Shown here: piece after piece, positions 11,256 through 61,529 of the stretch
Position numbering within the stretch: position 1 is the first letter of the stretch
Layout: each line of letters opens with the position of its first letter
NCBI GenBank assembly: GCA_964247055.1
Contig: OZ176051.1
Coordinates: 14,260,001-14,324,000 of the forward strand
Length of the DNA stretch: 64,000 bases
Source: Paragordius varius
Taxonomy: Eukaryota; Animalia; Nematomorpha
Direction: 5' to 3'
Notes under the pieces: generated by a model
Database searches by the model: none
Told to the model about the DNA's origin: nothing
Seen by the model: only the letters and a program-made list of their open reading frames with translations
Translations under genes and position numbers: made by a program

Positions 11256-11305
<50 letters not shown>

Positions 11306-14300
11306 CAACATATTATTTTTAGATAATCACAATATAAAAATCAATTTTTACAAAAGAAAGAAAATTAAAGGTGTACGTACCTTTAGAATGTCCTTGTAAC
11401 CATCCAAAGATCTAAACAAAAAAAGATATATAAAAGTAATAATTAACATTAGTGTCCAGACAAAAATGGAATAATAATTATTTTTTACAATATAAAAATA
11501 TTAATTTTCGCGTTTCCTATCATTAATTTTGTCAGACATGGTTACAAAAAGAACAAATTTAAAATTGAAAAATAAATTCTTTTGTCAAATTGATTAAACA
11601 TGTTTTATTAGTATCAGTTAAACGATCTTTAAAAAAATTATAAGTATACCTCATGCTTTTAAGGCTTACAAATCCATCATTTATGCGTTTAGTAAAATTA
11701 TTCAAAGCTTCAACTTGATCCCCATATTTCGATTTATATCCTTGGATCTAGATATTATATAAGGCAAACACAATGATTAGAGAAAGCAGAAATAGTAATT
11801 TGTTAAACTTACGTTGATAGATAATTATTCGTCCCCCCCCCATTTATGCATATAAAAAATTTCAAAAAAACCTTTATTGAAAAAAAACACTTACAGATTG
11901 GTTCATTTTGCGCAAAGAGAGTTGTAATTCAGTCAGTGTATTGTTTGCATCTATCGGATCTAATTGACGGCTTACAATTATTTCATGATTAAGTTTGTTG
12001 AGATTGGTTGCCAATTCGCTTGAAACATAAAAAAAAGCGAATAGTATGCAAAAACATTATTGAAAATCAAAACCAAAAATAAATATATTATAAATTTACA
12101 CCAGTATGATAGGTGATATATTATTTAATATAATGTTTAAGAATTGTGTTTATATAAGCCTATGCATATTTCAAAGCCATATTTAACTAAACTGGGCAAA
12201 AAATTAAGTTCAATTAAAAGCAAATGACTTTTTCTCACAAGACATGCATATTATCATGAACTTTCTAATGTTATCAGGATTGTTATGGAGAAATATTATT
12301 TAATATATTGTTAAGTAATATTCAAAAAACTAATAATGGATATATTAAACCAGATCCCACAATCGAGGCCTAATGATAGTAAGAGGTATTCAACTATACT
12401 ATGTTTAAAATTATATCCTTTTTTACTTGTTTTTGTGTTCTAAAATAGTTTGAAAGTTTTCCTTTGCATTCGCTTGTTTACTCATTAATTGGTGCAATTG
12501 AGTTTTCAAATCTTGCAATGTCATGGGGATAGGTCTGTAGTGCGGTAATAACGTTAAATCACTCGATGTGTCTTGTGATAATAATTTTTTCCTTGTGTTT
12601 TGGGGTGTAGAACTTTGAGAGGTTTGAGGCGCCTCATTGTTGTTTTTACCATAAGATAAGGCTAGATATTGTTGAAATCCACAATCTTGCATAAGATTTG
12701 TTGACGATCCTATTATTGGTAAGAACGAAACAAATTTGTATGTGAAACAAAAATAAAATGTTTAATTATCCATCTCAAACAAAATGTGTGACAATTGATA
12801 AATGACAAGTAATTTATTGAATATTGTTTAAGCCGAAGTGTTATTGTATTACAAATGCAATTGAAATTCAGCTAAAATTAAATGAATTTTTGGGACGAAT
12901 TACAAAGTTTACTGTAGTAATTGAAAATTCCCCCCAATAAATTCATTTAATTTTAGCTGAATTTTAATTGCAATAATAATTAATTTGTTGAAAATACAAG
13001 AGTTTTATACGTTATAAACAGACAGACTAGGTTTTTAACAATTAAGGTCTAACGCTATAAAAGAGAAATAAATACCATAATGCGATAAACAGTTGATTCT
13101 TAGTTTTTTAACCGATAATTTCTTACATTTTAAAACCGTAAAAATTTTTAGATAGCTGCTTGATTAAATTTTAATTGGCAAATTCTGTTATATGTAGAAG
13201 TTAGGTCCAACAAAATTTTCTAATCGCCTAAAAATATGACCATAAAAAGGGTATTTTACAGTCAAAAATGTTAAACATGTACACTTTTGACATTTCAAAT
13301 TAGATTTTAATTAAACAGAAAACATATTTCTCACCATATTAAACTGAAAAATAATATAAAACATATTTAATCACACTTTCACATATATTTTAAAATATTA
13401 TATCTCTAGAATAATATTATGTAACCGAAAACTCAATTCATAAAGTCATATGCAAAAAAGCCCTAGTTTTAGTGAAAGTTATAATTTTACCCAAAATTAG
13501 TGTGTATTTTTTTGAAATTGTAAAACATTTCTGGTATATTTAAATTATACTTATTTTTCCCATATTATTATGAAATAAAAATTTTTTATATGGCTAAATA
13601 GGTTACAATAAAAACCTACCTACACCACCTTTTCCAAAGTCCATAGTACGATCATTTAATGTTAATAAATGAATCAGAACGAAGCGTGAAAAACGGGCTA
13701 AAAAGCGTACAACTTTAAATCCAGTCGGGCACACAAATATGGACATTGTAATAGGCTCCAATTTGGCATAACTGAATTCCTTAAATATATATATATATAT
13801 ATTATATTTGATCGTAGAGTTTTTAATTAAAATTTAATGAAAACCATACATTTTAGCCTTCTTTAAATAAAGACTTAGTTTTTTTATAGTTCCCAAATAG
13901 TTACCAGTGTATGTTATGAAAGCCCTCATAAAGAGCCAAAAAATATAACTATAATATAATATCCAATGTCATTCATTATAATTATCAATTAAAAAATAGA
14001 AAATTTTATATAACATTTACACTTCAAATTCACCTTTGAACAATTTAAATTCATACAATTCGAATTCATGCTAAAATAAATTATTAGTTATTTAAGATTA
14101 CAAATTACCTGTTTTTTATATGTTGTAAGAAAAATGGTTAAAATTAAAGTTATACTGAAAAATAAGTAAGCTAAGTCATAAATTTCATATTAATAATGAG
14201 TTATATCAGTTTGACACATAATTTATTTTTAGGGTGAATGTGAATTGTATTGGTATTCGCAAATCATGATGCGGATAATAAGTATTGAGAGAGTGAGATA

Positions 14301-14885
14301 GATGAATTTTGAAATATAAGATTGATATTCAGTGAAATAAATATATTTTACAGATAGGAAATTAGAATAAAATGGAGGGGGGTGACCATGTTTGATTACG
14401 CCATCAAATATTTTTTAGAAGAAGGTACCAAAATAGTATCGTTTATAAAACATTTTCAGTACACCTTAAAAAATTAAATTTTTGAAAAAAAAACATGAAT
14501 TTGATATTAATAGCATACTTTGTCGATGTCAACTACCCATTGTCGAGATATTTGACTGAATTCTTTAGCTTGACGCGCATCAAAGATAGGCCAACATAAT
14601 CTTTATTTTTAAATTATAAAAGCTAATATATACTCAAATTTTTTTAGGGTTTCTTTCCTATCATACAACTCAAATAGGTGATACATTATAAGTTGAAATG
14701 CATATCGGTTAGATGATTCAAATAGATCACTAATTTTCAATAATATTATATTTATACTCTGTCAAAACTAATTCCAAATCATTGTTTTTTAAAAAATCAT
14801 TAAATTTTAGTAGTTCCAAGTTTTTTCTAAGAATGTCACCATACTTTTCAATAATCTCCAATTTTTTGTGTGAAAAAGAATTCAT
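9653..14885 (-). CDS. HAUS6: HAUS augmin-like complex subunit 6, about 742 aa, 10 exons
   Basis: Exons: 14885-14758, 14729-14634, 14600-14519, 13779-13620, 12709-12427, 12018-11895, 11747-11650, 11411-11381, 11234-10851, 10495-9653. All GT-AG and phase-consistent (2229 nt). NRYAFQLIMYHLF...LCWPIFDARQAKEF...IFVCPTGFKVVRFLARFSRFV aligns by eye to the HAUS6 N-terminal domain (NRDAFHIISYFLF...CWPPFD...LFLSPGGPKFIHLMYHFARFV). The C-terminal half is unrecognised. Confidence 0.8.
11260..11301. repeat. (AT)n microsatellite in HAUS6 intron 8
   Basis: Direct run of TA. Similar runs at about 40203-40238, 49243-49278, 51868-51902, 53145-53170 and 57672-57722. Confidence 0.95.
14011..14255. mobile_element. 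About 220-250 bp foldback MITE family; other copies at 22877-23097, 24084-24336 and about 42245-42525
   Basis: Terminal inverted repeat consensus TA(C/A)CATTTACA(G/A)TTCAAATTCAC with homologous interiors. Three copies lie in introns of HAUS6 and SEPSECS. Confidence 0.75.
14601..14633 (-). other. 33-nt intron (HAUS6 intron 2)
   Basis: GTATATATTAGCTTTTATAATTTAAAAATAAAG. It has an in-frame TAA, and removal joins KKFE to LCWPIFD. Confidence 0.85.
14730..14757 (-). other. 28-nt intron (HAUS6 intron 1)
   Basis: GTATAAATATAATATTATTGAAAATTAG. Needed to join the ATG frame to the DLFESSNRYAF frame. Confidence 0.75.
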
Positions 14886-14948
14886 CAGAAAATTAAATTA
14901 TGCGCCGTTTACATTCATGCCTCATTACACATGTCTTCAAAAATTTAA
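14886..14948. promoter_or_regulatory. Putative bidirectional promoter, 63 bp between two divergent ATGs
   Basis: HAUS6 ATG at 14885 (-) and orphan ATG at 14949 (+). Each has an in-frame stop shortly upstream. Confidence 0.6.
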
Positions 14949-16030
14949 ATGAGATGTTTTGATTATTTAGAAAAAGTTATTGTACAATACAATACGGACA
15001 TAGAATTTAATAAATGTGAAACATATAACATTTGGAATAAAGTTTTATATGAACTTTATTCGATAACAAGAAGGGAATTCTATAATTTTTTATGTTTACC
15101 CTTGGAAAAATGCCCTTTAGGTAAAATATATTTAATATTTGTAAGTATTGATTGGATATATTAGCTTTAATACTTATCCATACAACACTCGTTTGTACAA
15201 AATTTATGCCTCATTGTTTTACGAAAAACTTTCTAAATTTCGATTCTTTATTTTTCCTTGTCCATATCATCCACAAATAAATGTAGACACTTGTGAGATA
15301 AATTTAATGTAAGCATAATATATTTTTATATTTTATTCTTTATAGGCAGACTTCATCCTTAAAATCTGGTCTCAATCAAATATTTCACATGTTTAATGAA
15401 ATATTTACTGATAGCAAATCTATTGCCACTTTTCCAGTAAACGTTGAGGCTTCACTTATTTTAGGGCAAAACTCAAACGCATTTACCGCCAAAGTTTTGG
15501 ATTTTGAATCTCAGCATAAAAATCTTGTTTCTTGCAACGAAAACCCAACATTCCAAGATCCAAATGAAATTATGTAATATTCATTGTAAAAATTATGAAT
15601 ATTAAAAGACATGTAGATTACAGTCATGTATCCTTCATATTAAATTTATTTTTTTTCGTTAAATGGGTATATATATTTGGTAAAGGATGAAAAAACAAGA
15701 GCTCTATGGTAATTCTTATACCTTTTTGATGATATATTGTTAAATACCATAGAGCTCTTGTTGTTTCCATTCTTTACCAAATATTTATATCCATTTAACC
15801 AAAAAAAATAAATTTTTGATAAAATAAGGATACATGATATTACCATTTTCTAATATATATGGTATTTTTAATGAAGATTACACGTTGACAATCAAAAACG
15901 TGTTGAAACTCCAGTTAATTTATTAGAATCTCGAATCCATCAAATGGAAATTTACAATGAGAAAGAATATGAATCGTGTTGGGATAATTTGGTTGCTGAT
16001 AATCATGAACATTCCTATTCTTGGCTTTAG
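14949..16030 (+). CDS. Hypothetical protein, about 238 aa, 4 exons
   Basis: Exons 14949-15120, 15146-15308, 15346-15573, 15877-16030 (717 nt). GT-AG introns of 25, 37 and 303 nt, phase-consistent. Sequence MRCFDYLEK...FIFPCPYHPQ...ESCWDNLVADNHEHSYSWL; no family recognised. Confidence 0.65.
15121..15145 (+). other. 25-nt intron (orphan gene intron 1)
   Basis: GTAAAATATATTTAATATTTGTAAG. The only GT-AG choice I found that keeps the frame open. Confidence 0.6.
15619..15840. mobile_element. About 225-bp palindromic MITE; second copy at 24976-25205
   Basis: Near-full-length hairpin with TCATGTATCCTT / AAGGATACATGA ends and internal AACAAGAGCTCT inverted arms. It fills most of a 303-nt intron. Confidence 0.8.
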
Positions 16031-16185
16031 TAGCTAACATTTTTATATTACCAAAAATAAATTATTACCTCTGATATTTTATATCTGTAAATTTTTTTGA
16101 GTAACCTTTGTGTTCCTTAGAAGGAAACTACAGTGTCCACAAAAAATATCCTGATTTAATTTATATCTTCTGATAGAAAAAGATT

Positions 16186-17310
16186 ACACTAGACAACAAA
16201 TTTTTCTGCCACTCGAGTTTTTTGCATTTTTTGATATTTAATATCATTTTAACAGTAAATCTGAAATAAAAATTATAACTCGTTGGAAGAATTTTGTATA
16301 ATTTGATTTTTTGATTATGCGCCCTCTTTATCAAAATTTTACTAAAAAATGTTTTTCTTTGAAAATATACAAGTAATGCCCATTTCTAATATATCATTCG
16401 AAAGAGTATTAAAAACTCTATAAAATGTATACTAATATGTATTACATCGACAGTTAATATTGGACACAAAGAGCGACAAACGCGCGAAGCGAGAGCATTT
16501 TTTTAATTATTATATTTTTAAAACTAATGGATGAAAATAGCTCAAACTTTGTTTAGATGGAGATGAATGTCCAAAAAAGATAACACAAAAAAGTTTTTTT
16601 TGATTAAAACATTTTTTATTGCTTTTATGTCACTCAAAACAGCCATTTTTAAGTTTTTTGTTTTTTAAAAATTACCATCTCATCAATATTAATTTATTTT
16701 CTTTACAAGGCTGATAATTTCGAAAATTTAAAGATAAAAACAAAGTTTAAGATATTTTTGATCTTTTATAGCCATTATGTAATAAATTTACAGTTATAAC
16801 TATGAATTTTAGTATCCACTAGGTAAAATATTTATGATAATAATAAATTTTATTAAAAAAGCAAACCAAAAGCTTTTTCAAACATTTTTTTTAATTTAAA
16901 TACTAATATAACCCTAAAAATTATATTAAAATAATTTATATGATTTACAAATCAGTTTGTCTGCGAAAATTCTTGACTTATTTAAGGATTGAAAATTTTG
17001 ACCATTTAAATCCAAAAAACTTTTACATCCGATGGATTTAAATGACTTACTACCATTTAAAAGATGCAGTTTTTTGCGCTCTTTCGAATGATATAAAATA
17101 CATGGCTTCATATCTAAAACTTTATATTTTCGAAATTTCGAGTTTAATGTTAAATTTGGGCCAAAAATTATCGATAAACTCTAATATAAAAAAATTCTTC
17201 CATGTAAGACCAATTTTCTTTTCAGATATACTAATTATGTACTTTAATGAAAAAATTTTTAAATTTACAAGAATGGCATTTAAAAAAAGTTAAAATTTGT
17301 TGTCTAGTGT
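16186..17310. mobile_element. Non-autonomous TIR element, about 1.1 kb
   Basis: Perfect 18-bp TIR ACACTAGACAACAAATTT / AAATTTGTTGTCTAGTGT. The interior is homologous to about 55920-56330 and inversely to about 985-1160. Confidence 0.75.
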
Positions 17311-18164
17311 TATCATTGTGATTTTGGTTTTTGCTTTTACTAGTGATTAACATGGTAACTGCTTCATATTAAAGCAAATGCTTAATTCTTAAAAATATTA
17401 CTATTTAAAAGTAAAACAGTATTTTTTTAAATAAAAATCTGGTAGGTACCTTAAAATACGCAAAAATCCGAGATTCTGTGATAAAATTGTTTAATATATC
17501 CACATCTATATGGTTAATAATTTATTTTAGTGATATTTTTCGTAACGAAGCTTTTCGCCAATTTAAAAATTAATCGCAAATTTTAATGTTTTTATGTGGT
17601 GACCACCAAGTGCAAATAATTTTTTTAAATTTCATGACTTTATCACTTTTTTGTCCGCTATGATATATTGGGGTAGTTTAACATCTCTGGGCTCAACTTG
17701 TAAATTAATCTTTGATAGTTGTTTTAATTAAAATCTAATTAACAAAAATTGTTGTTCTATATTAGATATAAAAGCTATGCGTCTATAATTTGAAACAGTT
17801 GTAAAACACGTCGGAAACTAAACAGCTGATTATAAAATAAATATCAAGTTTTTAATGGCAAAATTCAACCTGAAAGCTTATTAAAGTCAATTATTTATAT
17901 TTTGCAACCATCATATTTTGCCTACTTCATTAAAAAATTAAAAAAAAGCCAAATTTTTTAACATTTTCCAAAATCTGTATTATACGCCTAAAACGCTAAA
18001 GCAAGCATATGATAGTCATATTAATCGCTTTTAAATATATAATTACTTCAAAAGATCATAAAATGTGTCCTGCTGAAAGAGACGATTCCAATTTAAATTT
18101 ATCCACCCTAATAAAGATTCTATAAATAAGCCAAAATATCCAAATCAAATATAGATCTAGGTAT

Positions 18165-18283
18165 GCAGAAAAGGTTGTGACAACTATGGTCCCAACCGTC
18201 ACTGTCTTCACAGGATGACCCTTAGCGCCTTTCTACCGTTTTACACGCCTCAGGGCAGGGAGAAGGCACTTTCTTGTTGGTGC
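18165..18283. mobile_element. 119-bp GC-richer insertion with a 10-bp target-site duplication
   Basis: ATCTAGGTAT at 18155-18164 and 18284-18293. No TIRs seen. Confidence 0.6.
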
Positions 18284-18383
18284 ATCTAGGTATATACAGT
18301 AAAACATGTAGTCTTACATATAAATTAAATGAAATAATAGTATTAAATTATATGCAATTTACCCCCTATAAAAGTATTTGAAG

Positions 18384-20698
18384 CAGTGGTACTCACCAAA
18401 AAAAATTGACGGGCCAAATAAAATATATTTTTTTCGAGGGCCATGAATCTTATAATGGCAAATATTCCATAGCTATTTTACACATATGCACATATTTATA
18501 ATCTAAATCAGCACAATGAATATTTTGCGAATCGCATGTAAATCCAGCTAAAAACTCGTTTTGCACCATCTAATTTAAAAAATATTTTGATATTTTATTT
18601 TCATATTAATTAATAATTTTTGGCTAATTTGGTTTCGCCTCACACAGGCCATTCTTAATACGTCGTCCATATGATCATCGGTTAAGCGATTTCTGTCTGT
18701 ATTCTTGACATACTTCATTTTTGAATATGCCGTCTCACTCGTGTAAGTTGAAGGAAAAACAGTTAGGATAACTTGAGCACATTTATTATATCTTCTTATT
18801 TATTTGGCACATCTTGGCAAAACTCTGCATATCTTTTTTCTCCACGATTCTCCTAGAATATAGCCTCCAAATTGGAATCATTTTTAAAATCTATGGATTC
18901 AATGATATGCGCCTGATCAAAACCGAAGTGCTCAAATCGCTTAATATTGATATATCCATATGCCATGGATTTTCAACGAGTTTTACAATTTTTATTTCTT
19001 AATTCTTGAAATCTGAATTTCATCTTATTAGATAAAAATGTTGAATGATTGTCTATTATTAACCGTGGTAAATTCCATATTTTCTTCATGAATCGTTTTA
19101 ATTGATAAATATAGGAGTGTATTTATAAAATCTTGGTTATATATTATTAATTTTCAAAAGCAAATGTTTGATTAGCAAATTGGGTTATTATTTTGCTCCC
19201 TTGAGAACTTGTATTAAAAATACTAAGTTTATAAGTAATGTCACAAAGGTAGGCTAATAAAACACACCATTCGTCCCTATTTTCCTCGTCAAACTTTCTG
19301 TTATATTTTATAAATAATATAATTTCATGTCTTAAAACAAAAAATCTGTTTAATACGCTGCTTAGGCTTAGCCATCGCACAGCGGTGTACAAACGAATAT
19401 CAAACTGACTGTGGATTGATTTCAGAAGGTTTTTGAATTTACGGCGGTTGAATTTGCCACAGATGTGATTAGCTATATCCACAACAGTTTTAATTACTAA
19501 ATTGAGTGATTCATCTTTTACACGCGAAACCAAGTTTTGCTGATGAATAAAGCAGTGAACGGATAATATTTTAAATACATTTGTTTTTCAAAAGAGCTTT
19601 GTTTATTCCAATCATAGAGGGACAACCATCTGTGCAGATCGAAACCATTTTTTCAGAGATATACCATTATTATTGAAAAAAGTGCTAATTATTTCGAGAA
19701 AATCACTTTTTTTCGTAGTATTATTCATTAGTAAAATTTTTAAATATTCCTCGTACGAAGAGCGCACATTGAAGTGTTGAACTAATATCACTGCTATTTG
19801 CACTTTTTCATAACGAATGTTTTGTTAAAAATATATTTAGACATATCTTCAATGCGTTAAGCACATGTTGAATCAGAAAGTTAAAGTTGTTTTTGCCTCA
19901 TGATTTGATCTTTATTATGGAATTTATCAAATATAAAAGTGCAACCATTTATTAGACAATCTTTTAATATTTGGGAATCAGTAACGGTTTTATATTTTTT
20001 TCTAAAATATAGCAAATTTTATACGAAGCTAATGTTACAGCTTTTTTCTGGGAGAAAGCTATGGACATTAAGATTTTTCTTTCTGGTATAAATACTTACC
20101 CTTTTTTTCGTTTCTTTCCTCATGATTTTCTGAGAATGATGGATTGTAATTCAATATTGTATTTTTTAAAATTATGTTGTCCTTACACACAAGGGAGGTA
20201 GCAACATTTTTATTTAAAACGACAAATCTTCTTATTTCTAAAAGAGCAATTTCCATCGGATAATATACGTTTTTTAGCATTAGATGTCATTCTTTAAATT
20301 TAAGAATATGTTTTGAATTGTGCTATAAAAAAACAGGTTGAAATTTAATGAATGTAAATGAGTTTGGATAGCAATGAAAAGAATATGTATATGCATGTTT
20401 GGATGAAAGGCTTGCTTACAATGGAATGCAATAAAAATTTCAAATAGAAAATAAAATAGAATACAGAAACAGTGTGCCAAAATTTTGAAATCATTTCAAT
20501 GTAGGGAATTTTTTCCAATTTTGGGTAAAAAATAAAAATTACCAAAATTTTATCTAAAAAAATAAATTAATATTAAAATAAGGGAAAATTCGTTTATGTG
20601 TTATTTAAAAAATTTTTGATAAAAAAATAAGTATCAATATGGCCATAGGGCAATTTTTAAGCACTCTTCGCATGCGGCCCGCGGTTTGAGTACCACTG
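18384..20698 (-). mobile_element. Decayed hAT transposon (Buster/SPIN/GTF2IRD2-like transposase remnants)
   Basis: TIR CAGTGGTACTCA / TGAGTACCACTG. Flanks ATTTGAAG / ATTTAAAC. Transposase fragments LYTAVRWLSLSSVLNRFFVLRHEI (19147-19533) and the dimerisation motif FPSTYTSETAYSKMKYVK...RNRLTDDH (about 18670-18760). Confidence 0.9.
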
Positions 20699-21080
20699 AT
20701 TTAAACTAACAGACAACCACAAACTCTCTTGCATCGGATCCGCCCTATTTGCAGATAGTCTTTGAAGGCGGCGCTCGTGTCGACGCTGACGCTAGATGTA
20801 ATGAAATCTTTCCTTTTCCTCTAACAATTCTTACTCACATAAAGTAATTCGACGCCATTTTTATATTAAAACATTTTTGCATAATATCGATGTTTTAAAC
20901 GGTAAATTTAATTTATAAAAATTTTTAATATTTAGGCCTATATGTCATGTGGCCTAAATTTTTGATCTAAGGGTCATCCAAAAAATACTAATATCAGGTA
21001 ATTTTTGATCAATACGTCATAGTCAGTCCGATTGTGTTAAGCTTTAAATAAAGTTTAGCAGCTGTTTAATTTTTTAAGCT

Positions 21081-21934
21081 ATGAGCGAAGGCAGAAAAAT
21101 AGATTTTACAAATTGTAACAAAAATATATGGATTTTAAAAGTATAATTTACTTAAATGCAGGTTCCAAAATACTTATCGGAAACATGGGAAACTCACGAT
21201 CAGGAGATTGGAAAATTAATGATAGACAAAACAAAGTAAACAATATAATTTAAACGAAAGAAAAGAACAAAAAGGTCCTGATATAAATTTTTATTCTTCG
21301 ACAACAAAATCAAATTTACCGCAAATTCACAAAGTATTTATGAATCCTATACCTAATAATACCCTCTTTATTTCATCTCATTACGAAAATGATGAATCCA
21401 ATCCACTTTCCTCCATTTATTTTGTCGAAGGAAAGGCTAGCCAAAAACTTGAGATTCGCCCCCAAACTAACTCTACTGAATACATAAACGTATATTGTAT
21501 TTTACATATATTTGGTTTTATTTATAAATTATCACATTTTTTATTTTTAGCTTAAAAAGGCTCAGTTTGCTATAAAAAACCAGCCAGTTAACACCGTTCA
21601 AAAATTGGATAAACATGTTCAAAATTACAAACCCGTTTCATCACACGCTATGTCTAAGAATTCATTTTTTGGTTCTGAAAGACCCACTCCTAAAGACATT
21701 ACTGTCGGAGCCAAGAAAATGCGATTAGACAAAGAACAAGTAATGGAAATTTTATTTACCGCTTTCGAAAAACACCAATTTTATTCGATCAAGGATTTGG
21801 TTAACATCACTGGACAACCTATAACTTATTTGAAAGAAATTCTGAATGATATATGCGTATATAATTTACGCAATCCGCATAAAAATATGTGGGAACTCAA
21901 ACTTGAATATCGTCATTATAATGCACCATCCTAA
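21081..21934 (+). CDS. GTF2F2: General transcription factor IIF subunit 2 (RAP30), 248 aa, 4 exons
   Basis: Exons 21081-21140, 21162-21235, 21261-21489, 21551-21934 (747 nt). IWILK|VPKYLSETW, NYKPVSSH and LFTAFEKHQFYSIKDLVNITGQPITYLKEILNDIC...HKNMWELKLEY match RAP30. AATAAA near 21968. Confidence 0.95.
21141..21161 (+). other. 21-nt intron (GTF2F2 intron 1)
   Basis: GTATAATTTACTTAAATGCAG. It has an in-frame TAA, and removal restores the conserved W-x-x-K-VPKYL. Confidence 0.9.
21236..21260 (+). other. 25-nt intron (GTF2F2 intron 2)
   Basis: GTAAACAATATAATTTAAACGAAAG. Required for the frame change between exons 2 and 3. Confidence 0.8.
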
Positions 21935-22296
21935 TATGTGTACATATCATTATATAAATCTCTTATAATAAATAAACCTTTATTGGTTAGAGCGTAATTA
22001 ACCAGGGTTTTACCTACGACTTTTTGAGACACTTTGCGCTATCGAAGTTATATGAAAATATGTTCACAAATCATAGTAAAAATTAATATTTTTTAATTTT
22101 CTAACAAAGTTTTTCGGGCAAAAGATTAAATAAATAATAATTATATTGGGTTTTTGAGTCTAAGTGAAAACTAATAAATTATTTTTTAGATTATGTATAT
22201 ATTTTTAAGAGGCCCGCCAGTAAATTGAGTCCAAAATGCTGCGCATTTGTGTTAGACACTTCTGTGTGAAACATTCATAGTTTCATCTGATATGCG

Positions 22297-25200
22297 ATGG
22301 ATTTAGGTGTTTTGAGCACATTTTTACCATTAAATTACGTGACACAAGTAAAAGATGCCGAAAAGTCTATCCAAAAAATTATTAATACAATATTATATCA
22401 CGTAAAACATTTGTGTTTATATTGTTATAGAAAAAATTATTGGATTACCCGCTCTCAGACCACACAATTCGTCACATTTTGAATCTTTTTTCCATGATGG
22501 ACTCTAACAATTTTATAAATACGTGTGGTGTAGGGGAGCGTGAAGGACGAATGTATTCTTCATTAGTGGCCCAACGTCATTTTTAGTAATTAGGAATAAA
22601 ATATAAGGTTAAATATTATGATTTAGCTTATCACATGGTATTGGTAGGTCTGGACAATTAACTGAACTTCAGCCTAAAGCCTTGGGTTCCAGCTGTTTAT
22701 ACCAATTAACTAATTTGTTGGTAAAAGATGCCTTCGTAGTTGCAGGTAATCGATTTTTGCATCTATAACTAGCTTTACTTCCATAATTTATGGTTTTTAA
22801 ATAATTGTTTTTTTGATAATAATCGGAATTCTGAGTAGTTTTACTGCTTTGATGATACTGTATTAATGTTTTAATATAACATTTACAATTCAAATTAATT
22901 CTTGAACAATTTAAATTCACTGTTTTTGGGCTAATATAACTCATCATTGATATGAAATATATTCTTATGGCATAGTTTATTATTTCAGTATTATAAATTT
23001 CATTATTTAAAATTATATAGGTTTTTTTTAGCCTCATAAAAATTTATTTTAGGGGGATTTTGAATTGTTCAAGAGTGAATTTGAATTGTAAATGGTATAA
23101 AAATTAAATCCATTGCGTTTTCTGTTAAAAAATTACTGGGCGGAAGGTGGCAATAATACCTACGGACACCTGTTGTAAAAGACAATAAAAAAAAGGAAAC
23201 TTTATATAATATTTTAGCTTTTTGCCCTCTACAAATTTATTGGTTTTATTCCCTGAGTCCTGTTTTTATTTTGTCGTCGCTCTAATAGTTATTGATTGGT
23301 TAAATTACTTTTGATAATAGTTTAATTTGCCTTAGGACAGTTAATAAATTGACACATCCTACGAATACAAGAAAGCTAATATAGCATTTGTGTATTAATA
23401 CAAAAATTTATAACCGGGGTCCCTACACATCACTCTTGACTCCAAACAACACTGGTAGGAATAGCGTGATTGACTTAACTGAATTTAAGGCAAGTTTATA
23501 TATATATATGAGCAAGAATGAAATAAGATTTATATAAGATAACCTATAATCTGGTTAAAACAACAAGAAAAATAAAAGTAAAAGATTGCATTAAGAACCT
23601 ACAAGAAGTACCTTAACTCGATGTTAATTTTAATTGCCTAAAATTACTGTGATATTTGCAACGTAACTCCTACCATTTAAAAATTATTAAAGCTGGCTGT
23701 TTAGTTTGGAAAACATTTTTGGCCCTAAATTTAACAATCTATAAATACATATATATGACATAGGATTAACCAATGTTAATTCATGCCTCATCGTTCCATT
23801 AGCTACGGGCATGGCACTAACAATGTGTTTTTTAACCCTGAAAAAGAGTCGCCCAAAAGCAAAATATATCATTTTCTCCAGGATCGATCAAAAATCATGC
23901 TTTAAAAGTATCCTAACCGCCGGTAAGATGTATGAAAGTGTTAAATGTATATAATTAAAAATAATGTCATAAGGGCTGTTTTTGTAAATTTTCGCACTTT
24001 TATAAACAATCATATTTCAAAAAATTCATATTTAAATTTTTTCGTAGTGGCTAATTAAAGTCCAAAGAACTATTGTTGATATATACCATTTACAGTTCAA
24101 ATTCACTCTTGAACAATTCAAATACACCCTAAAAATAAATTATATGTGTTCGAACTAATATAACTCATTATTAATATAAAATCTAAGTTTATGGCATAAT
24201 TTATTATTTTTTCAGTATTATTTTAATTTAAAACAAAATTTTAAAAATATATTAAAAAATAGGGAATTTTTAATCTTTAAAAACATGAGGGGGGAATTCG
24301 AATTTTTTAAGGGATGAATTCGAACTGTAAATGGTAAATATTTTGCAGGATTTATCCCTATAATCATTGAGGGCCAATTAACCCACGATGGAACGGATGA
24401 TGAAATGCGTATAAAGCTCGACGACAATATAAAAAATTTCACGGATTTTATTACAAAATTTATTAATGTTAATGCCCAAACATTATCATTACCCATTGAA
24501 TCTGAAGATGATATTTTATGTTTTCTTTCCACCACTTCGTGTTTTGCTCCACGCGGTTCTGACAACATTTCAAACATTGGAATGTTTTGTGCCCACGCCA
24601 ATATTGTCCACATTGTAAATAATGCGTATGGGATGAATTCATTAACACTCATTCGTCAAATTAAGTAAGTAAATTTCAATTCTGTACACTTGTAATTATT
24701 CTTTGTTATCAAAATTTTATTTTATAATATATTCGGTTTATAAAAATTTTTTCGAGCAAAATAATTTATATTTAATATAAATTGTGTGTACGTTGTTGCT
24801 TTAAAGGGTCTTAATGAACGAAATTTCCGATAAGGTCCATTTATATGCAATATCTTTTAATTAAGTATTTTTTTTGAAATTTTTAACACTGTTTCCTCTA
24901 AAAACAAACGTTTTGCCGGCATATTTTGTTGGTTTGGAAAGCTTTTGTACAAATTTTTCGAGTATTAAAATAGATTCATGTATCCTTTATTTTAACAAAA
25001 AATTTATTTTCTTTCTTTAAAGCGGTATAAATATTTGTTAAAAAAATGGAAAAACAAGAGCTCTATATTTAAAATATCATATTCATTAAAAAAGTATCAG
25101 AATTACCAGAGAGCTTTTGTTTTTTCCATTCTTTATTAAATATTTATGCCCATATAACAGGGAAAAAAAATAAATTTTTGATAAAATAAAGGATACATGA

Positions 25201-28200
25201 CTGCACATATAAATAAGAAACAGTTTGTCAGACTTCCCACAAAATACCCATATGCATATTTTCATTTTATTGCGGAAAAATTATTTATACATTGATTGAA
25301 GTTATACTGTTGAAATCACAGTGATGCTTGGCATGTCTAACTAATATAATTAATATTATTTTTTTACTTATATGATAACTAGTAAAGCAGTGTTAAAGGG
25401 TGCCCGCATAGATGCTATGGTACAAAGTTGCGATAAAAATTTTATGGTACCAGTCGGCGGAGCCATTATCAATGATTTTAAGCCCTTGAAGAAAGCCAAC
25501 AAGGGTAAAAATAGAATATTTTAAGCAAAAATAAAATAATTTTGTACGAACTTTTTGTTTCCCAGGTAATATGGATAAGAATGGAGGAAATAACTCGAAA
25601 ACTTGTAGTACAACAAACCAAAATAAACGAAATTTCATCGAAGAAGTGGCGCATGTATACCCAGGTATATCTATTAATATTTTGTCTATCATTTTTCTCA
25701 ATGGAAAAAACCAACTATTAAACTCTTAAAAACATTAAAAAAGATTTCAAAATTCATGTAGTGAGCGAAAAATAATTTTATTATTGTCTCACATTTAACT
25801 TTAAAGGGAGGGCCTCAATAACACCATCCCTTGACATTTTTATCACCTTATTATCGATGGGTTCACAACGATATAAACAATTACTGATATCTCAGCTTGA
25901 AAACTTTGCCTATTTCAAGTCTGAACTGGAAAAAGTTGCACAAACATACAATGAACGAATCCTAAACACCCCAAATAATCCTATATCAATCGGTTACTCT
26001 TTAAACTTTTTTTATCAATTTGATATGAGGTTGCTTAGATAATAATTTTTTGCCTTAACAGTATTTTTTTGTGAATTACTATGAATGCAATATAAAATAA
26101 AATAGGATTCATAAGTACATATATTTTAATGACTTTTATGTATTTAATCATTTTCATAGTTTTTACCTCCAATATTTTAGTTATTCATTATTTTTATTCT
26201 ATTTATATGTGTTTTAATTATATCTTGTAAAAAAATTTTACGATTTTTTAGAATTATAGAATATAATAAATATTATTGTATAAACGCCCCTTTAAAACAA
26301 AACAGTAATATTGATTTATGACATTTGGTTTGGGCGCAAAATCAAAATATTTTCTAAAATCCAGCGTGTATTCGTTTCAATGTAATGTGTATTATGATAT
26401 CCCCTTTTCACAAAATGTTACTAAACCATAATGAAAAATACTATGTAAGCCTATGAACAAAACTAAATTTTATCACAAAAGTTAGCATATATATATATTT
26501 AGGTTTTTTTTCTTGCAATCTGGCTTGCTTTTTTGCTAACATTTTTTGTGATATGCGCGTGGTATTGGCAATCTAATTGCGATTACTATTATTATAGATA
26601 TGGGACATGAGACTATTTCTTTTAAATGCTACTAAAATCAGACTTTAAATCAGGCGTGCCCAACATATGGACATTAACAAATATTTCATAAACTACTACT
26701 ATTTATAACATCCTAAATTTGGAAAATTTAAAATTTACATTTGTTTGTTAAACAAAATCAATTCTACTTGAATTTTGTAAAAATTTGTAATTAAAATTTC
26801 TCTTGAGCTGCAGAAATACTTTGGAGGGCCGCGTGTTGAGCACCCCCTGCTTTAAATAGCCGACTTGTTTAATGCATATATTTAATCCTAATCGCAGCCG
26901 TACAAAATAAGTAGTTTATAAAAAAGGTTTCCAAACTGTGTTAAAAAATTAGAAGTTTGAAATTATACTCAACGATTAAAATTCTTACAAAAAAAAATCC
27001 GTAATATCTATTTTCTAAAGATTTTTACATTATGTCAATTTTTAGGTTTCGTTTGTTAGCTTTAGGACACACAATTAGAACAGATAAATGCAGAATGCGA
27101 AATTTTGTGATTAAAAACCAAATGCACCAAAGAATTAATTATTAATAATTTTATGTCATCTTTTTTGGTTAAAGCTGCTGGTATATAAAATATTTTTCGA
27201 AAAAAAACTTTGTGATTTTACCAATATTTATATACAAAGAATATAGCCGCTATTAACCTAAATTAATTTATATTTTTTAGCCAAAGATTTGAATTTTTTT
27301 ACTACTTTAACACTACACTATTGAAGCAATGGGTATAATATAGCAAAAAATGTGGTATAGCATTTATTGTTTGATAAAAACTCAGATGCTATTTAAAACA
27401 TCCTTTTGTGAAGCATCGTTTTTACAAAAAAATGCAAACAAATTCCTCCAAATTTTATTCATTTGGCTTTAATTTTTGCATTTTGAAACCACTTCTAAAA
27501 TATCAAGGCTATATAATAGATGTTCTTTTAAGTATTTATCCAAGTCTATCAAACATTAAACTTTTTTCCAAAATCTTTCATAAAACATATTTTTTATACT
27601 AAATATATGTACTTCATACATAAATATTATTATATACATTTTTCATGCAAAAACCTCATTTTTCCAAATGCAACATTTTTTCAACCAAACGCATCATTTT
27701 GTTACTAATCACTACCGTTTTCTCATTTAAGCTAGGCTAGAGCTAGCAAGAGGGCTAGGTTCATAAATATGACTCGAACTATCTAAATTGGTTGGTGGTT
27801 GGTTTTTCCTAAGTCGTAAACGACTTTTTGGATATAGTTTTAACTATTTCTTTCCATTTTTTTCTATCTTTAACCGCTATATTGAGCTCTTTCAGTGTCA
27901 TTTTGGTCTCTTCTTTTATCATATCCAACCACCTCATCGGTGGTCGGCCTCGTTTCCTTTGCCCTTCTACCTTCCCAAACATTGTATCTTTCTCCAGAGA
28001 ATTCGATCGCATGACATGACCAAAATATGTTAACTTTCTTTTTAGAATTATCTCCATGATGTTTGTTTTAGGTTTTATTTCTGTAGTTAGACTTTCATTC
28101 TTAATTTTATCCTTCCAGGTGTATCCTAGCATCCTACGCCAGCAGCTCCTTTCAAAAGCCATGAGCCTTTCTTTGTCCCTTTTTCTGAGAGTCCAACTCT

Positions 28201-31200
28201 CACCTCCATATGTGATGACCGGGAGAACGAAACAGTAGAGTAATCTTTTTTTGGTTTCAACTCCTACGCTTTTGTTTTTCCAAATCTTTATTAATTTGGT
28301 CATCGCTTCTCTACCCAATCCTATTCTCTTTCTGATGTCAGGAGTTGAAGACCCATCCTCTGAAATTATTGCGCCCAAAAACGTTAACTGTTTAACTATT
28401 TCTATTTCTACTCCTTCTATTATAATTGTAGGCTTTTTTCCTGTACATAATATTTTGGTTTTGTTAGGATTAAGCCTAAGACCATACCTCAAACTTTCCT
28501 TTCGAATCTCTTCAATCAATTCCTTCAAATCATTTGCACTTTCAGCTATAAGAGTGGTATCGTCTGCAAACCTTAAATTATTGATTGTTCTCCCTCCTAT
28601 TCTTACTCCAATATTTTTACCATCCAACTTCCTCATTATCATTTCTGTGCACATATTGAACAGATAAGGGGATAAGCAACACCCTTGTCTGACTCCTTTC
28701 AAGATTGGTATTTCGTCTGTGTCCCCCGCTGGTGTTCTAATAATCGCTCTTTGTTTTACATACAGAGAGCATCTTATTAAGTGAGACGATACCCCTACTA
28801 ACTTTAATGTTTCCCACAAGGAGTCATAGTTAATTGAATCGAATGCTTGTCTGTAATCAATAAAACACATGTATAATTCTTTCTGGAACTCTTTTGATGT
28901 TTCCATTATCCTTCTCATGTTTGAGATATGGTCTCTTGTGCTTTTTCCCTTCATAAATCCGGCTTGATTTTCTGGTATTTCTGTCTGTATGATACTGTGC
29001 ATTCTGTTTTGTATTACTTTTAGTAAGACCTTACTAGCGTGGCTAATAAGAGATATGTTCCGATAATTCTCGCATTGGAGTACATCTCCTTTTTTATATA
29101 TTGGGAGATATACAGATGATGCCCAATCGTTTGGCCACTCACATGTTTCCCACACCTTTTGACATAACTGGTGTAACTTTTCAACGGGAATAGCTTTTAT
29201 GAACTCTATTGGGATATTGTCTAATCCCATCGCTTTGTTGTTAGATTTGTTTTAAGGCTAATTCAACCTCCTCTCTTAATATATCTGGATCACGTTCTTC
29301 TTCTTTTAATTGCAACACCTTTGTTTGAGGAGCCTGATAGAGTTTTTGGGTGTATTCCTTCCATCTTTCTCGTACATCTGTTTGTTTGCACAATATGGTG
29401 CCATTCTCTTTTTTAATCTTTTGTGATGATATAAAAGGTTTATGAGTCATTTGCTTCAGTTTCTGGAACATTGGTTGCATTAATCCTTTTTTGTTATTTA
29501 ATTCCACTTCCAAACATTGTTTATTAAGAAAATCTTCATAATCCTTCCTTGTTTGTCGTTGAAATTCTCTGTTATATAATTTTACCATTTTATTATCACC
29601 TCTTGATTTAGCTTTTCTCCCCTTTTCTGCTATCTCTATACTCTTTTCTGATATCCATTTGTTATCTTTCCTCTTTACTCTCTGCACTTTTTCTTTTGCC
29701 ACTTCATTAACAACATTTTTTATCGTTCCCCATAATTGTTCTGAGCTATATCCATTGTCCAATCTTCCTAATCTATCTTTGGTTTCTGTTCTAAAACTAT
29801 TTGGAATGTTCCGAGTGTCATATCTGTATATCTGTTTAACCTTATTTTTAATTATTTTAAGTTTGATTTTGGTTATTAAAAGCTCATGATCGCTAGAGCA
29901 ATCGCTGCTTTTGCTTGTTTTGGTATCGATTATAGAGCTTTTCCATTTTTGAGGACACATTATGTAATCAATTTGATTCTTATATTTACCACATGGAGAG
30001 GTCCATGTGTATAACCTCCTATTGTGTTGTGGAAACCATGTGTTGGTTATCATCATCTCATTTTCTTGACAAAAATTGATCAGTGCTTCCCCGGCCTCGT
30101 TTCGTTCTCCCAATCCATATGGCCCGACTATTTGATCTACTCTACCTCTACCAACTTTGCTGTTCCAATCCCCTCCTATGATAATCATATCTCCTTTCTT
30201 CGTTTCATCCAAAACTATTTGCAACGTTGCATAAAAGTCCTCTATGTCTTCTTTGGGAGCGTTTGACGTAGGAGCATAGACTACTATGTATGTAAATTTA
30301 GGTGGCTTGGCATTCAGCCTAATACTCATGATTCTGGGTGTATATGGTGTATAACTAATGAGACTTTTATTTAATTTGTTTTTTATTAATACTGCAACGC
30401 CTTCAGATTTCTGGTCATCTCTCCCCGATCTTAACAATGTATAATTTTCGTTTTGTACTTTCGCGCTACCTTTTTGCTTGGTTTCCGTTAGACCCAGTAT
30501 ATCTATGTTCAATCTTTCCATTTTCTTTTCAATTATCACCTGTTTGGTTGATGTTAAGGAACGTACATTCCAGCATCCAACTTTGAAAATTCTTGTTAAG
30601 TTCATTTAGTAAAACTATTTTTTGGCAGTAATAAACGAGGGTGGTTTGCCATTGCCTTCCCTCTCACTTACCCTCTTTACAAAAAATAAATATCTAGAAT
30701 AATTAAAATTAAAGAGTAATCTTTATAAATGTTGTTAATTTGGATAAATTATAAATATTGATATTTTGCTCTGTCTGGCAATCATAAAGGAAAAATATAA
30801 AGAAATTATGGCTAGGCTAGTAAAAATAAAATAATTAGGCACCAAGGAGTAGAGAAAAAAAAAAGAGAGAGATCTGTATAACAATGATTTTTGATGACTT
30901 AAGAATTATGTTACTCTTTAAATTACATACTTAGCATACAAATAAAATAAAAACTCTACAAAACAAAGAAAAAGATTAATAATTACTAAAAGGAAACCTA
31001 TTTTTTAAATATATTTATAGTATATAATAAAATAATACTATCCTTGAATATCCTCCCGCTTTCAATCACATAGTTTCATGCATGAAAAAAAAATCTACTA
31101 TCTAAATTATCTATACCATTGCTGATATCTCAACAGTTTTTTCTTTCTCGTGTGAGCTGGCAACTAAGGACACATTGGTCGAAATGGCTTTTAAAAAATC

Positions 31201-32277
31201 TGTCATTATTTTCATTTTTGGAACACTACTGCGTTTTCCTTCGCTCTTTTGCGTTTGATTGAAAAAATGTTACGTTTGCTTAAAAAAAATGATGTTTTTG
31301 CATGAAAAATGGTATATAAACTTTTTTACTGCCTCATATAGCCATGTCATTAGATAACATTATGGGACAAAACAACATATCCCAGCAAAACGCCGCATCC
31401 AACACAAAGCCAAAAAAATCAGTAACTGAAATTGGAGCAATGTTATATACTCGTCGAGTTACTGGTGCGCGGTAATCCTTATTTATTCCACATTTTAATT
31501 GTGTTTTATTTTATTGTGTTTAAAAAGCGAAAAATATTGAAAGTTACGTTGATGATATTTATAGATAACTGAGAATATTTTCCTTTAACATAGCTAGTTC
31601 ATTAAATTATCATATTATTGTTACCTGCTGATATTTAACAAGTTTGTTGTGTCAACTTTATCACGACCGACATATTAGGAATGGTTTTTTTTTCATTAAG
31701 AGAGAAAATAAAATAAAATTTGACAAAAAATTTAACCCAAAATAAAAACTATAATGCAAAAAAATGGAAATGAAACCACAACTTATTTATCGAAATCCGT
31801 TTTTCCATCAAAGCAAGCAGTGAACTTTTTTAACAATACAAAAAATTAAACACACCTAATACACTTTTTGTCCTTAAATAGAGTGTTGTTTTACTATATA
31901 GTATGCATGCACATTTATGCTGGCCTTCTTTTAACATTATTGTTGGCCAATTTGTATGTAATACAATAGTATATGGGTAAAAAACAAAGGAGAATTAAAA
32001 TTTAACAATTTTTTCCTATCTTACTACAACATTAAATTTGATTTAATTATTATATGTGCATACTATATTTTTTTAATATCTATGTAGAGTGGTATACCCA
32101 ACGTCAAAATCTACAATCATTGATGGCTATAATTTTGTTAATTGGGGATCTCATAACTCAAAATATTCTTATGCATACTTAACTGTAGCCTGTACCTTAG
32201 GACTTGAACGTAACACCATTGATAAATTTTGTGCGAAATTACGTAATGTATTGAAAGATTTTACCTCAACAAACTAG
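22297..32277 (+). CDS. SEPSECS: O-phosphoseryl-tRNA(Sec) selenium transferase, about 526 aa, 10 exons
   Basis: Exons 22297-22401, 22431-22585, 22627-22745, 23764-23922, 24349-24664, 25383-25504, 25566-25664, 25807-25992, 31342-31471, 32088-32277 (1581 nt). Motifs MDSNNF...[58 protein letters not shown] (PLP lysine) and YPGRAS. Confidence 0.95.
22402..22430 (+). other. 29-nt intron (SEPSECS intron 1); intron 2 at 22586-22626 is 41 nt
   Basis: GTAAAACATTTGTGTTTATATTGTTATAG. The frame shift is needed to reach MMDSNNF. Confidence 0.85.
26651..26849. mobile_element. hAT MITE, 199 bp, in SEPSECS intron 8
   Basis: TIR CAGGCGTGCCCAAC / GTTGAGCACCCCCTG. Perfect 8-bp TSD CTTTAAAT on both sides. Confidence 0.85.
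27785..30670 (-). mobile_element. Near-intact RTE-clade LINE (APE endonuclease + reverse transcriptase) with one frameshift, in SEPSECS intron 8
   Basis: ORF 29241-30605 is APE ([33 protein letters not shown]). ORF 27809-29230 is RT ([27 protein letters not shown]). CCAA-like 3' tail; 5' motif GAAGGCAATGGCAAACCAC. Confidence 0.95.
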
Positions 32278-32331
32278 TACAACGTAAATATATATACACC
32301 ACAAATAAATTTATATTATATAAAAATTAAT

Positions 32332-34579
32332 TTACAATGTATGCCAAAACAGTGATATTGCCTTAATCATCCCCACATCAGTGTAATTAATGTAATAAAG
32401 TAGGCCCAGAGTAGTTATAGAAACCGCACTAACACCCATTTTAGTTAACGGGCCCAGGAAATTCCAGCGGTTATAACGGTCCCATCGTTCAACATAATCA
32501 CTCATTACAGTTTCCATTCCCCTACAAATTATTGATGATATATATTGGTTTTTTAACACTAAAAAACGTTAAAAATATTATACAAATTATTTTAATTGTT
32601 AAAAAATACGAGAAAATCAGTTTAAAATACTATATACTATATATAAACATTTTTTAATTCCGTTGTTGTAACTCTTTAGTAGAAAGAATTTTTTTTCATA
32701 TTTTACTATACGAACCAAATTCCAAAATTAACATTATTATTAATCAAGTAAATAACTCAAAATTAAAACACATTTGTGAGTAAAGGCATTTGTTTTAAAC
32801 CAGGGATGTCCAACACAAATGGCTTGAAGATCCACATTTTCGACCTGAAAAATCGGAAGACCCACATTTGAATTAATATCATTTGCACTTCAAGAGTGTC
32901 CTTGAACACTTCAAGTTGGTCCTTAAAATTTTTATTTAACCATTATTTATGCATGTATTTTTTATTTTATTATTTTTTGACCTAATTTTCTTAATTTATA
33001 TTATATATTTTATCATTTAAAAATAAAAAAATTTATTCAAAAACCACTTTTTTATTAAAAACTAATTTTTTTCCAATTAAAAAATTATTTAATTTAAATG
33101 TATTTAATGAAAAATTGTAAATAATACCTAGAAAACTTATAAATTTTTAATTAGGTGTTAAATTCTCATAAATATCTAATATTAATTACAGAAATTAAAA
33201 AATATTTTCTCAATGATTAAAAGTTTACATTGATTTAAAATGTTAAATAATTAAAAATAGGTCAAAAACGATACAATAGATAAATGATTTACGATTTGAT
33301 TGATAAAAGTAAAAAACATAACAAAAACGTCAAAGGATTAACTTAAACTGTTCAAGAAACTTGAAATGTTTAAGGACCAACTTGATGTTTTCAAGGACAC
33401 TCTTGAAGTGTAAATGTTATATATCTGCTATTGATGAAAACACAAATATAGAATATATCACAATGAATTCTATTCAAGAAATTAATGAATTTATCCACCA
33501 CTAAATTCCTGAACTTGTTTGTATCAAATTTTAAATATTTTAAGAATATATTAGAAATATATATATGGGCTACCGAGGAATCTTTTATAAATGTAAAATA
33601 AAATTTCACCTCTCAATTAAGATCAATATGAACATATTTGTTTTACAATGACACTTAGAAATGTAGTTAATATCATCAGTTTTAAAGCATAAACATTAAT
33701 AATCTATTGAAGATATTGATACCAAATTTGAGATATTATTATACTGCGGTTTACACAAATATGGCTCTTTTAATAAATTAAAAACATTTACCAATTCAGA
33801 ATTTTTTCGAATACGTAATATATAACTTCAATAATATAGGTATAACTATATTAAAAATGAGTATGATTTTCAGATATATGGCTCTCTCACTAAATAATTA
33901 CCATAAAAGGTTTTCCAATGGCAAGTATTATAAAGATTTTCAGATTGTAAAGGAAATGATAAAATAAATGTCATAAAAATATTAATAACATCGAATTTTA
34001 TGAAAATCAAATTAAAATCTTTTTATAGAAAATTAACACTCAAAAATAAAACTTTTTGCCAGAAATTTTTTTTTAAATATTTTTAAAAATATACTCAAAA
34101 TTTCGGAACCACTTGTTGGACGCCCCTGTTTTAAACCCTAATCATTAGCGGCATAAAATTAAAATACGTTAAAAGATTATATATATTTTTCATTTAAGTA
34201 TTTCCATTCTATATTTTTAAAATTATTTAGGAGATAATTTAAGTGTTAAACTGAAAGATTTAAATTACCAATGTGAATGCAATATTAATGTGGTAGCTAA
34301 CAAATAATCCATAAATGGTGCTTGATAAAAATAGGCTAAAGGATACATAGAAGCAAGTCCAACCGTAACAATCCTTTCAATCGTCCAATGTAATGCCGTA
34401 TGATCTTTTTCCTCGCCTTTAATTTTCAATACAGTTGGAATGGCATCTATAATAAAAAAATAAAATTAACTTGCCACTGTAGATTGAAAACGTGGAAATT
34501 GTGATAGTTTAAAATAGTTTTGTTGATAAATAAAGTTAGGATAGTTTTTATTTGCAACAACCCGAAAAATTAGAGACAT
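32332..34579 (-). CDS. SDHD: Succinate dehydrogenase cytochrome b small subunit (CybS), 158 aa, 3 exons
   Basis: Exons 34579-34471, 34446-34269, 32521-32332 (477 nt). Presequence-like N-terminus, ALHWTIERIV, MDYLLATTLILHSHW|GMETVMSDY and LYYINYTDVGMIKAISLFW match SDHD. Confidence 0.92.
32801..34128. mobile_element. hAT non-autonomous element in SDHD intron 2, carrying a nested MITE at 32877-33421
   Basis: TIR CAGGGATGTCCAAC / GTTGGACGCCCCTG. Perfect TSD TTTTAAAC. The nested MITE has TCATTTGCACTTCA ends and about 21-bp subterminal repeats; a second copy is at 52568-53140. Confidence 0.85.
34447..34470 (-). other. 24-nt intron (SDHD intron 1)
   Basis: GTTAATTTTATTTTTTTATTATAG. It has an in-frame TAA and phase 1 on both sides. 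A weaker upstream donor (GTTTTC) would give a longer intron. Confidence 0.7.
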
Positions 34580-61401: not shown

Positions 61402-61529
61402 GTAATTTTCGGATAAGCCTTAATAAATGGAATGAACAATAAATACCTTTTCTCAACCGCCTAAAAAATCTGGATTTTTAATTGCACCTTACACTAACAA
61501 GGGGTTTAGGCAATAAAGCTACAATAACA

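Follow-up and report, generated by a model that had tools for sequence, protein, structure and literature searches.

Spliceosomal introns of 15–33 nucleotides (nt) occur in ciliates (Paramecium, and Stentor with introns of 15–16 nt), in the Bigelowiella nucleomorph and in microsporidia, and there selection for stop codons or frameshifts makes their retention detectable. Among animals, a September 2026 Molecular Biology and Evolution survey of 51 genomes found introns below 30 nt only in the Myxobolidae and in Dicyema japonicum, and predicted that further cases of ultra-short animal introns would come to light (PMC13644364). The myxobolids Henneguya salminicola, Thelohanellus kitauei and Myxobolus have a median intron of 22–27 nt, and the ultra-short introns of D. 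japonicum are attributed there to Lu et al. 2019 and Zverkov et al. 2019, which we take as that survey cites them (PMC13644364). The present work concerns a 64,000-nt stretch of the genome of the horsehair worm Paragordius varius (assembly GCA_964247055.1, contig OZ176051.1, positions 14,260,001–14,324,000 of the forward strand; hereafter the window), where a sequence-only reading had proposed nine GT-AG introns of 21–41 nt in GTF2F2, SEPSECS, HAUS6, SDHD and an ‘orphan’ gene. All nine segments were located where and with the lengths that had been claimed, their GT...AG ends were confirmed, and each of the nine was found to block read-through, either by an in-frame stop or by a length not divisible by three. 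We consider it very likely, from sequence comparison, that these are genuine U2-type GT-AG spliceosomal introns shrunk to 21–41 nt. The claim that all nine are real did not survive whole: on our tally comparison establishes four and makes three probable, and the two in the ‘orphan’ gene, which do not rise above chance, are unproven.

GTF2F2, which encodes TFIIF-beta (21081–21934, + strand), was modelled with four exons, 248 amino acids and introns of 21, 25 and 61 nt. The 21-nt intron (21141–21161, +) lies in phase 0, runs GTATAA...GCAG and contains an in-frame TAA; the 25-nt intron (21236–21260, +) lies in phase 2, runs GTAAAC...AAAG and interrupts a lysine codon (AA before, A after) that follows IDKT, and reading through it meets a stop. 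Exon 4 hits Pfam TFIIF_beta (E 1e-21) and, as a query against 1.84 billion representative proteins, returned 940 TFIIF-beta relatives. The spliced model aligns with TFIIF-beta homologues as a single stretch (residues ~3–246), the best homologue being XP_065325179 of another horsehair worm, Gordionus sp. m RMFG-2023 (E 1e-81 over residues 3–246), to which it is 61% identical over its full length, versus 39–47% to other animals. The 21-nt junction divides NIWILK from VPKYLSE, inside the invariant TFIIF-beta motif WLVKVPKY at its K–V step; the pattern W-L-[VLI]-K-[VIL]-P-[KN]-Y was present in 16 of 16 aligned homologues, and none of them has a gap at this junction.

Both intron positions are shared with other animals. 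Mapping the protein onto the Gordionus locus placed a 42-nt intron in phase 0 at the same boundary between K and [VI], the position of the 21-nt intron, and a 39-nt intron in phase 2 in the same split lysine codon, the position of the 25-nt intron. The same two codons and phases hold introns of 520 and 156 nt in the nemertean Lineus longissimus, and of 1742 and 348 nt in the scallop Mizuhopecten yessoensis. Since position and phase are common to all three species, the two GTF2F2 introns are evidently ancient bilaterian introns that have shrunk. In Gordionus the complete gene (OX940783.2; 7813–10272 of the locus segment) has four short introns (42, 39, 45 and 45 nt) and then a long one of 1425 nt, and two independent annotations concur on the short ones (39–45 nt). 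The two 45-nt introns are without counterpart in the window, where exon 3 of GTF2F2 is continuous, implying either intron loss in the window species or gain in Gordionus. The 20-codon exon 1 differs from that of Gordionus at 16 of 51 nt; because 12 of these 16 differences fall at third codon positions and 14 of 17 residues are unchanged, the comparison indicates that this exon is under purifying selection. No synteny with Gordionus was seen within 10 kb of GTF2F2. A contig 79% identical to the winged-helix part of the gene was set aside as a genomic contig of another taxon (37% GC).

Two further junctions could be followed through protein profiles. SEPSECS (22297–32277, +) was modelled with ten exons, 526 amino acids and introns of 29, 41, 1018, 426, 718, 61, 142, 5349 and 616 nt, and Pfam SepSecS matches its exons 2, 3, 4 and 5. 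Around the 41-nt intron (22586–22626, +; phase 2, GTAATT...TTAG) the profile reaches position 29 at the end of exon 2, the split codon and one further residue account for positions 30–31, and residue 2 of exon 3 takes position 32. HAUS6 (9656–14885, −) was modelled over its first four exons (14885–14758, 14729–14634, 14600–14519 and from 13779 on), which are separated by introns of 28, 33 and 739 nt; Pfam HAUS6_N covers positions 28–57 in exon 2, 60–87 in exon 3 and 90–125 in exon 4. Across the 33-nt intron (14601–14633, −; phase 2, GTATAT...AAAG, with an in-frame stop) the count passes from 57 through the split codon at 58 to 59 and then 60, the second residue of exon 3, with no gap. These continuous coordinates mean that removal of the 41-nt and 33-nt segments leaves neither gap nor overlap. 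It had been claimed that splicing restores conserved protein; this was borne out residue by residue for four segments (GTF2F2 21 and 25 nt, SEPSECS 41 nt and HAUS6 33 nt), and for the other five what is restored is the reading frame. The TFIIF-beta alignment, the conserved positions and the gap-free Pfam coordinates together support spliceosomal GT-AG introns far under the usual animal size floor, as the sequence-only reading had held.

The 29-nt segment of SEPSECS (22402–22430, +; phase 0, GTAAAA...ATAG), the 28-nt segment of HAUS6 (14730–14757, −; phase 2, GTATAA...TTAG) and the 24-nt segment of SDHD (34447–34470, −; phase 1, GTTAAT...ATAG, read-through hitting TAA) are probably real introns too. 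In all three the downstream exon, confirmed by homology, opens just behind a stop and lacks a usable ATG. Exon 1 of SEPSECS supplies an ATG and 35 codons; in a PDB alignment residues 10–51 of exon 2 pair with human SEPSECS 48–89, and with exon 1 included the N-terminus comes within 3 residues of the human numbering. HAUS6 exon 2 likewise requires an upstream start, and exon 1 provides an ATG and 42 codons. Residues 2–28 of that exon align with residues 45–71 of human HAUS6 (7sqk_F), and residue 45 of the model, exon 1 counted, is residue 45 of the human protein. SDHD (CybS; 34579–32332, −) was modelled with three exons, 158 amino acids and introns of 24 and 1747 nt; Pfam CybS occupies positions 23–76 in exon 2 and 78–133 in exon 3, exon 2 has no ATG before the domain, and exon 1 (an ATG and 36 codons) lacks acidic residues and contains four basic ones, as in a mitochondrial presequence. 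On a leave-one-out coding score the first exons of SEPSECS and HAUS6 each reached the 82nd percentile, although codon-usage scoring is too noisy under 40 codons, the well-supported exon 1 of GTF2F2 itself scoring low.

In their anatomy the nine segments are spare. The 5′ end reads GTA in eight and GTT in one, followed by A or T, and the 3′ end is TAG, AAG or CAG. Seven of the nine are at most 29 nt long, five of those seven being supported, and A+T makes up 76–92% of each segment; with C at only 3% overall no real polypyrimidine tract is evident. A yTnAy motif is present in six, and A/T-rich runs lie 5–12 nt upstream of the AG, nine sequences being a small sample for such features. The U12-type 5′ splice site [AG]TATCCTT and the TCCTTAAC branch site were found in none of the nine, and a comparison of the last 14 nt showed no clear difference between micro-introns and longer introns at the available sample size. 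It may be supposed that the branch adenosine probably sits in the A/T-rich stretch ~5–12 nt before the AG, that the micro-introns would be removed by intron definition, and that this spliceosome would tolerate a minimum spacing between 5′ splice site, branch and 3′ splice site much below that of other animals. Retention of a micro-intron would then yield a truncated protein.

Several points weigh against this account and should be set out together. The first exons of SEPSECS and HAUS6, searched by themselves, gave no meaningful Pfam or PDB match, and SDHD exon 1 was not searched; what recommends these three junctions is the need for a start codon and the N-terminal length, and not homology of exon 1. 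Conservation of intron position was compared for GTF2F2 alone, and the branch point and mechanism are drawn from nine sequences. No protein or contig of the same species was recovered by searches with GTF2F2 exon 4 (among representative proteins and among homologues, the latter taking in proteins of 0.55–1.75 times the query length), by a full-length query with the Gordionus orthologue or by exact look-up of ten open reading frames (ORFs) of the window; with no RNA or protein of the same species found, splicing is inferred and not observed. Finally, the two junctions of the ‘orphan’ gene, a 25-nt segment between exons 1 and 2 (15121–15145, +), which has ORF continuity and nothing further in its favour, and a 37-nt segment between exons 2 and 3 (15309–15345, +), are unproven and no better than chance.

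The measure of chance was a null of Markov-shuffled sequence, in which we counted the ORFs of 50 codons or more that a 20–45-nt GT-AG segment could link to an upstream ORF of at least 20 codons beginning with ATG. Such a join was available to ~4% of these ORFs (143/3518), and the window itself holds 18 such joins; ORFs of 50–70 codons numbered ~88 per strand in the shuffles versus ~130 per strand observed. An alternative built on these figures would hold that only the homology-anchored junctions are real, and that some of the others (25 and 37 nt in the ‘orphan’ gene, possibly also SDHD 24, SEPSECS 29 or HAUS6 28 nt) are chance joins, the true first exons lying elsewhere behind ordinary introns. 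It is helped by the ‘orphan’ exons and by the first exons without detectable homology mentioned above, and we regard it as a serious but minority possibility. Against it, exon 1 gives SEPSECS and HAUS6 the human N-terminal length and SDHD a presequence-like start, the next intron in both SEPSECS and HAUS6 is a homology-anchored micro-intron, and three independent events of this rarity would together be improbable. As each would arise by chance in ~4% of cases, the three probable junctions are individually suggestive and, taken together, convincing, yet not proven.

The ‘orphan’ gene (14949–16027, +; modelled with four exons, 237 amino acids and introns of 25, 37 and 303 nt) fares differently along its length. 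Its exons 1 and 2 stand at the 34th and 55th percentile of the coding score, which amounts to no coding signal; no significant Pfam match was obtained for exons 1–3, nor any PDB match for exon 2 or homologue for exon 3. Because ORFs of 50–70 codons are common and exons 1 and 2 lack coding signal, Pfam match or homologue, the two short junctions do not exceed chance; exon 3 is coding-like and needs an upstream start, and exon 2, which would lead to it, is unsupported. The gene is nonetheless partly real, since exon 3 and a further exon at 15877–16027 score at the 99th–100th percentile. It probably does not end at the stop assumed for it but continues, across an intron of 303 nt (15574–15876), into that last exon, which matches Pfam APOBEC_C at E 4e-5, above the curated cutoff, along with APOBEC2, NAD1 and NAD2, and which matched APOBEC3G/AID chains weakly (E 0.03). 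The canonical deaminase motifs HxE and PCxxC were not found in the gene. By eye, exon 3 carries NVE...SC at the spacing of HxE...PC, so that the product may be an AID/APOBEC-like protein with a dead zinc site. At 228 nt, exon 3 could be skipped with the transcript staying in frame.

That the short segments are never removed, and mark pseudogenes or assembly or insertion artefacts, is very improbable. It can draw on the lack of same-species transcript evidence in the collections searched, but splicing leaves every gene with an intact ORF of full length, GTF2F2 exon 1 is under purifying selection, the segments have GT-AG ends and stand at ancient intron positions, and nine such artefacts across five genes are not credible. 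Removal by some non-spliceosomal route (cutting of the IRE1/XBP1 or tRNA-endonuclease type, somatic DNA elimination or ribosomal bypass) is more improbable still, for although the range of 21–41 nt spans the size of the XBP1 intron (26 nt), all nine segments have GT...AG ends, two are homologous in position to ordinary spliceosomal introns of three other animals, and their sizes grade into the 61-nt and longer GT-AG introns of the same genes. U2-type spliceosomal introns reduced to extreme shortness remain our preferred reading.

Where the short introns sit within their genes is a second feature of the window. The seven supported micro-introns begin 60, 105, 109, 128, 155, 252 and 289 nt after the ATG, whereas every other intron of the four genes identified by homology begins at least 311 nt after it and is 61–5349 nt long; position along the gene thus separates the two classes in these four genes. 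In the ‘orphan’ model the third intron (303 nt) begins 625 nt after the ATG. Ten of the 19 introns modelled in the window measure 61–5349 nt, and insertions of miniature inverted-repeat transposable elements (MITEs) and of a long interspersed nuclear element (LINE) are found among them. MITE-like or hairpin repeats with terminal inverted repeats of 44–76 nt lie at 22875–23099, 24082–24330, 15642–15815, 25040–25170 and 32876–33420; SEPSECS, SDHD and the ‘orphan’ gene have MITE-like families in common in their long introns, and none was found in the micro-introns. The LINE occupies SEPSECS intron 8 on the opposite strand (27809–30605, −) and looks nearly intact, with two long frames of 454 amino acids (endonuclease/exonuclease/phosphatase) and 473–480 amino acids (RVT_1 reverse transcriptase).

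Restriction of the micro-introns to the 5′ end would amount to a position-dependent regime, which could come about in two ways: intron growth and transposon insertion might be excluded near the promoter, or the splicing of such small introns might need cap-proximal assistance. We would suggest, tentatively and as a somewhat doubtful generalization, that in hairworm-type genomes a promoter-proximal zone that reaches some 300 nt past the start codon squeezes ancient introns to the physical minimum of the spliceosome (~40 nt in Gordionus, ~21–30 nt in the window species), while introns further downstream are free to reach kilobases and to take in transposons. If true, this would point to a position-dependent rule, for example cap-assisted splicing of introns otherwise too small or exclusion of insertions near promoters, and to a recent lowering of the spliceosome size limit within one phylum.

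The window as a whole is AT-rich (23–35% GC, described as 27% GC DNA) and holds ordinary animal genes amid transposon debris; a scan against Rfam gave no family above threshold, and a tRNA scan gave none. Genes are tightly packed even though their introns are long: HAUS6 and the ‘orphan’ gene lie head to head, their starts separated by 63 nt (14885/14949), SEPSECS and SDHD lie tail to tail with stop codons 54 nt apart (32277/32332), and the GTF2F2 stop is 362 nt upstream of the SEPSECS ATG. A 606-codon open frame at 6593–8410 (−) encodes a histidine acid phosphatase (His_Phos_2, with the RHG motif and many N-x-S/T sites), which may begin with a first coding exon of 9 nt ahead of an intron of 57 nt. 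Two exons of a FERM gene, 2.6 kb apart, lie at 58570–58685 and 61281–61410 (+; FERM_N at E 3e-11, FERM_M at E 7e-9), and the 5′ end of this gene was not found in the window. Broken open frames at 18600–20300 (−), with motifs such as HCFIHQQNL and VRWLS, are presumably the remains of a decayed hAT-type transposase; Pfam gave no match for 19150–19587 within them.

Introns below 30 nt in a third animal lineage, unrelated to the myxobolid cnidarians and Dicyema with their reduced genomes, would mean that the metazoan spliceosome is open to repeated retuning. The window is repeat-rich and has kilobase introns, and miniaturization of introns would therefore need no genome compaction. Gordionus, with 39–45 nt, and the window species, with 21–25 nt at the same sites, would together offer a within-phylum series for studying which changes to the spliceosome lower the size limit. 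There are practical consequences as well, as gene finders and BUSCO-type tools that set a lower limit on intron length could split such genes or overlook them. The BUSCO completeness of Gordionus was given as 71.6% in its genome preprint, and we infer that such an annotation effect could bear on reports of large-scale gene loss in hairworms. Neither that preprint nor a comparative preprint on Mermithidae and Nematomorpha mentions introns, and a full-text literature search on hairworm introns returned nothing relevant.

Set beside the systems described so far, the closest relative of this locus is GTF2F2 of Gordionus itself, which has the orthologous introns at the same codons and phases, an AT-rich genome (27% GC) and the same order of short 5′ introns and a long last intron. 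It differs in scale, its introns of 39–45 nt being close to the usual animal floor, against the 21 and 25 nt of the window at the positions common to both. The list of lineages with comparably short introns in the sequence-only reading lacked the myxobolid myxozoans (PMC13644364). These resemble the window in having GT-AG introns below 30 nt, a 5′ signal cut down to GTA, little at the 3′ end beyond AG, A residues just upstream of that AG, and conserved intron positions between conserved exons. Unlike the myxobolids, with their compact genome and tiny median, the window has micro-introns that share genes with introns of 0.4–5.3 kb holding MITEs and a LINE, keeps them within ~300 nt of the ATG and belongs to another phylum, within the Ecdysozoa. 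Dicyema, also a parasitic animal, combines conserved intron positions and lengths of ~20–30 nt with a 5′ splice-site motif that is reduced, as far as the survey’s citations describe it; on the same footing, short introns are its genome-wide norm, in contrast to the two position-dependent intron classes of the window genes. The compact, transposon-poor arrangement of Myxobolidae and Dicyemida, with short introns as the norm (median below 30 nt), was not what we found in the window. The ciliates, nucleomorph and microsporidia are unicellular lineages with uniformly tiny introns, and we know of no positional restriction of tiny introns within their genes. Ultra-short animal introns are thus already known; what would set the hairworm-type case apart from myxobolids and Dicyema is a non-compact genome combined with an architecture that confines them to the 5′ end of the gene.

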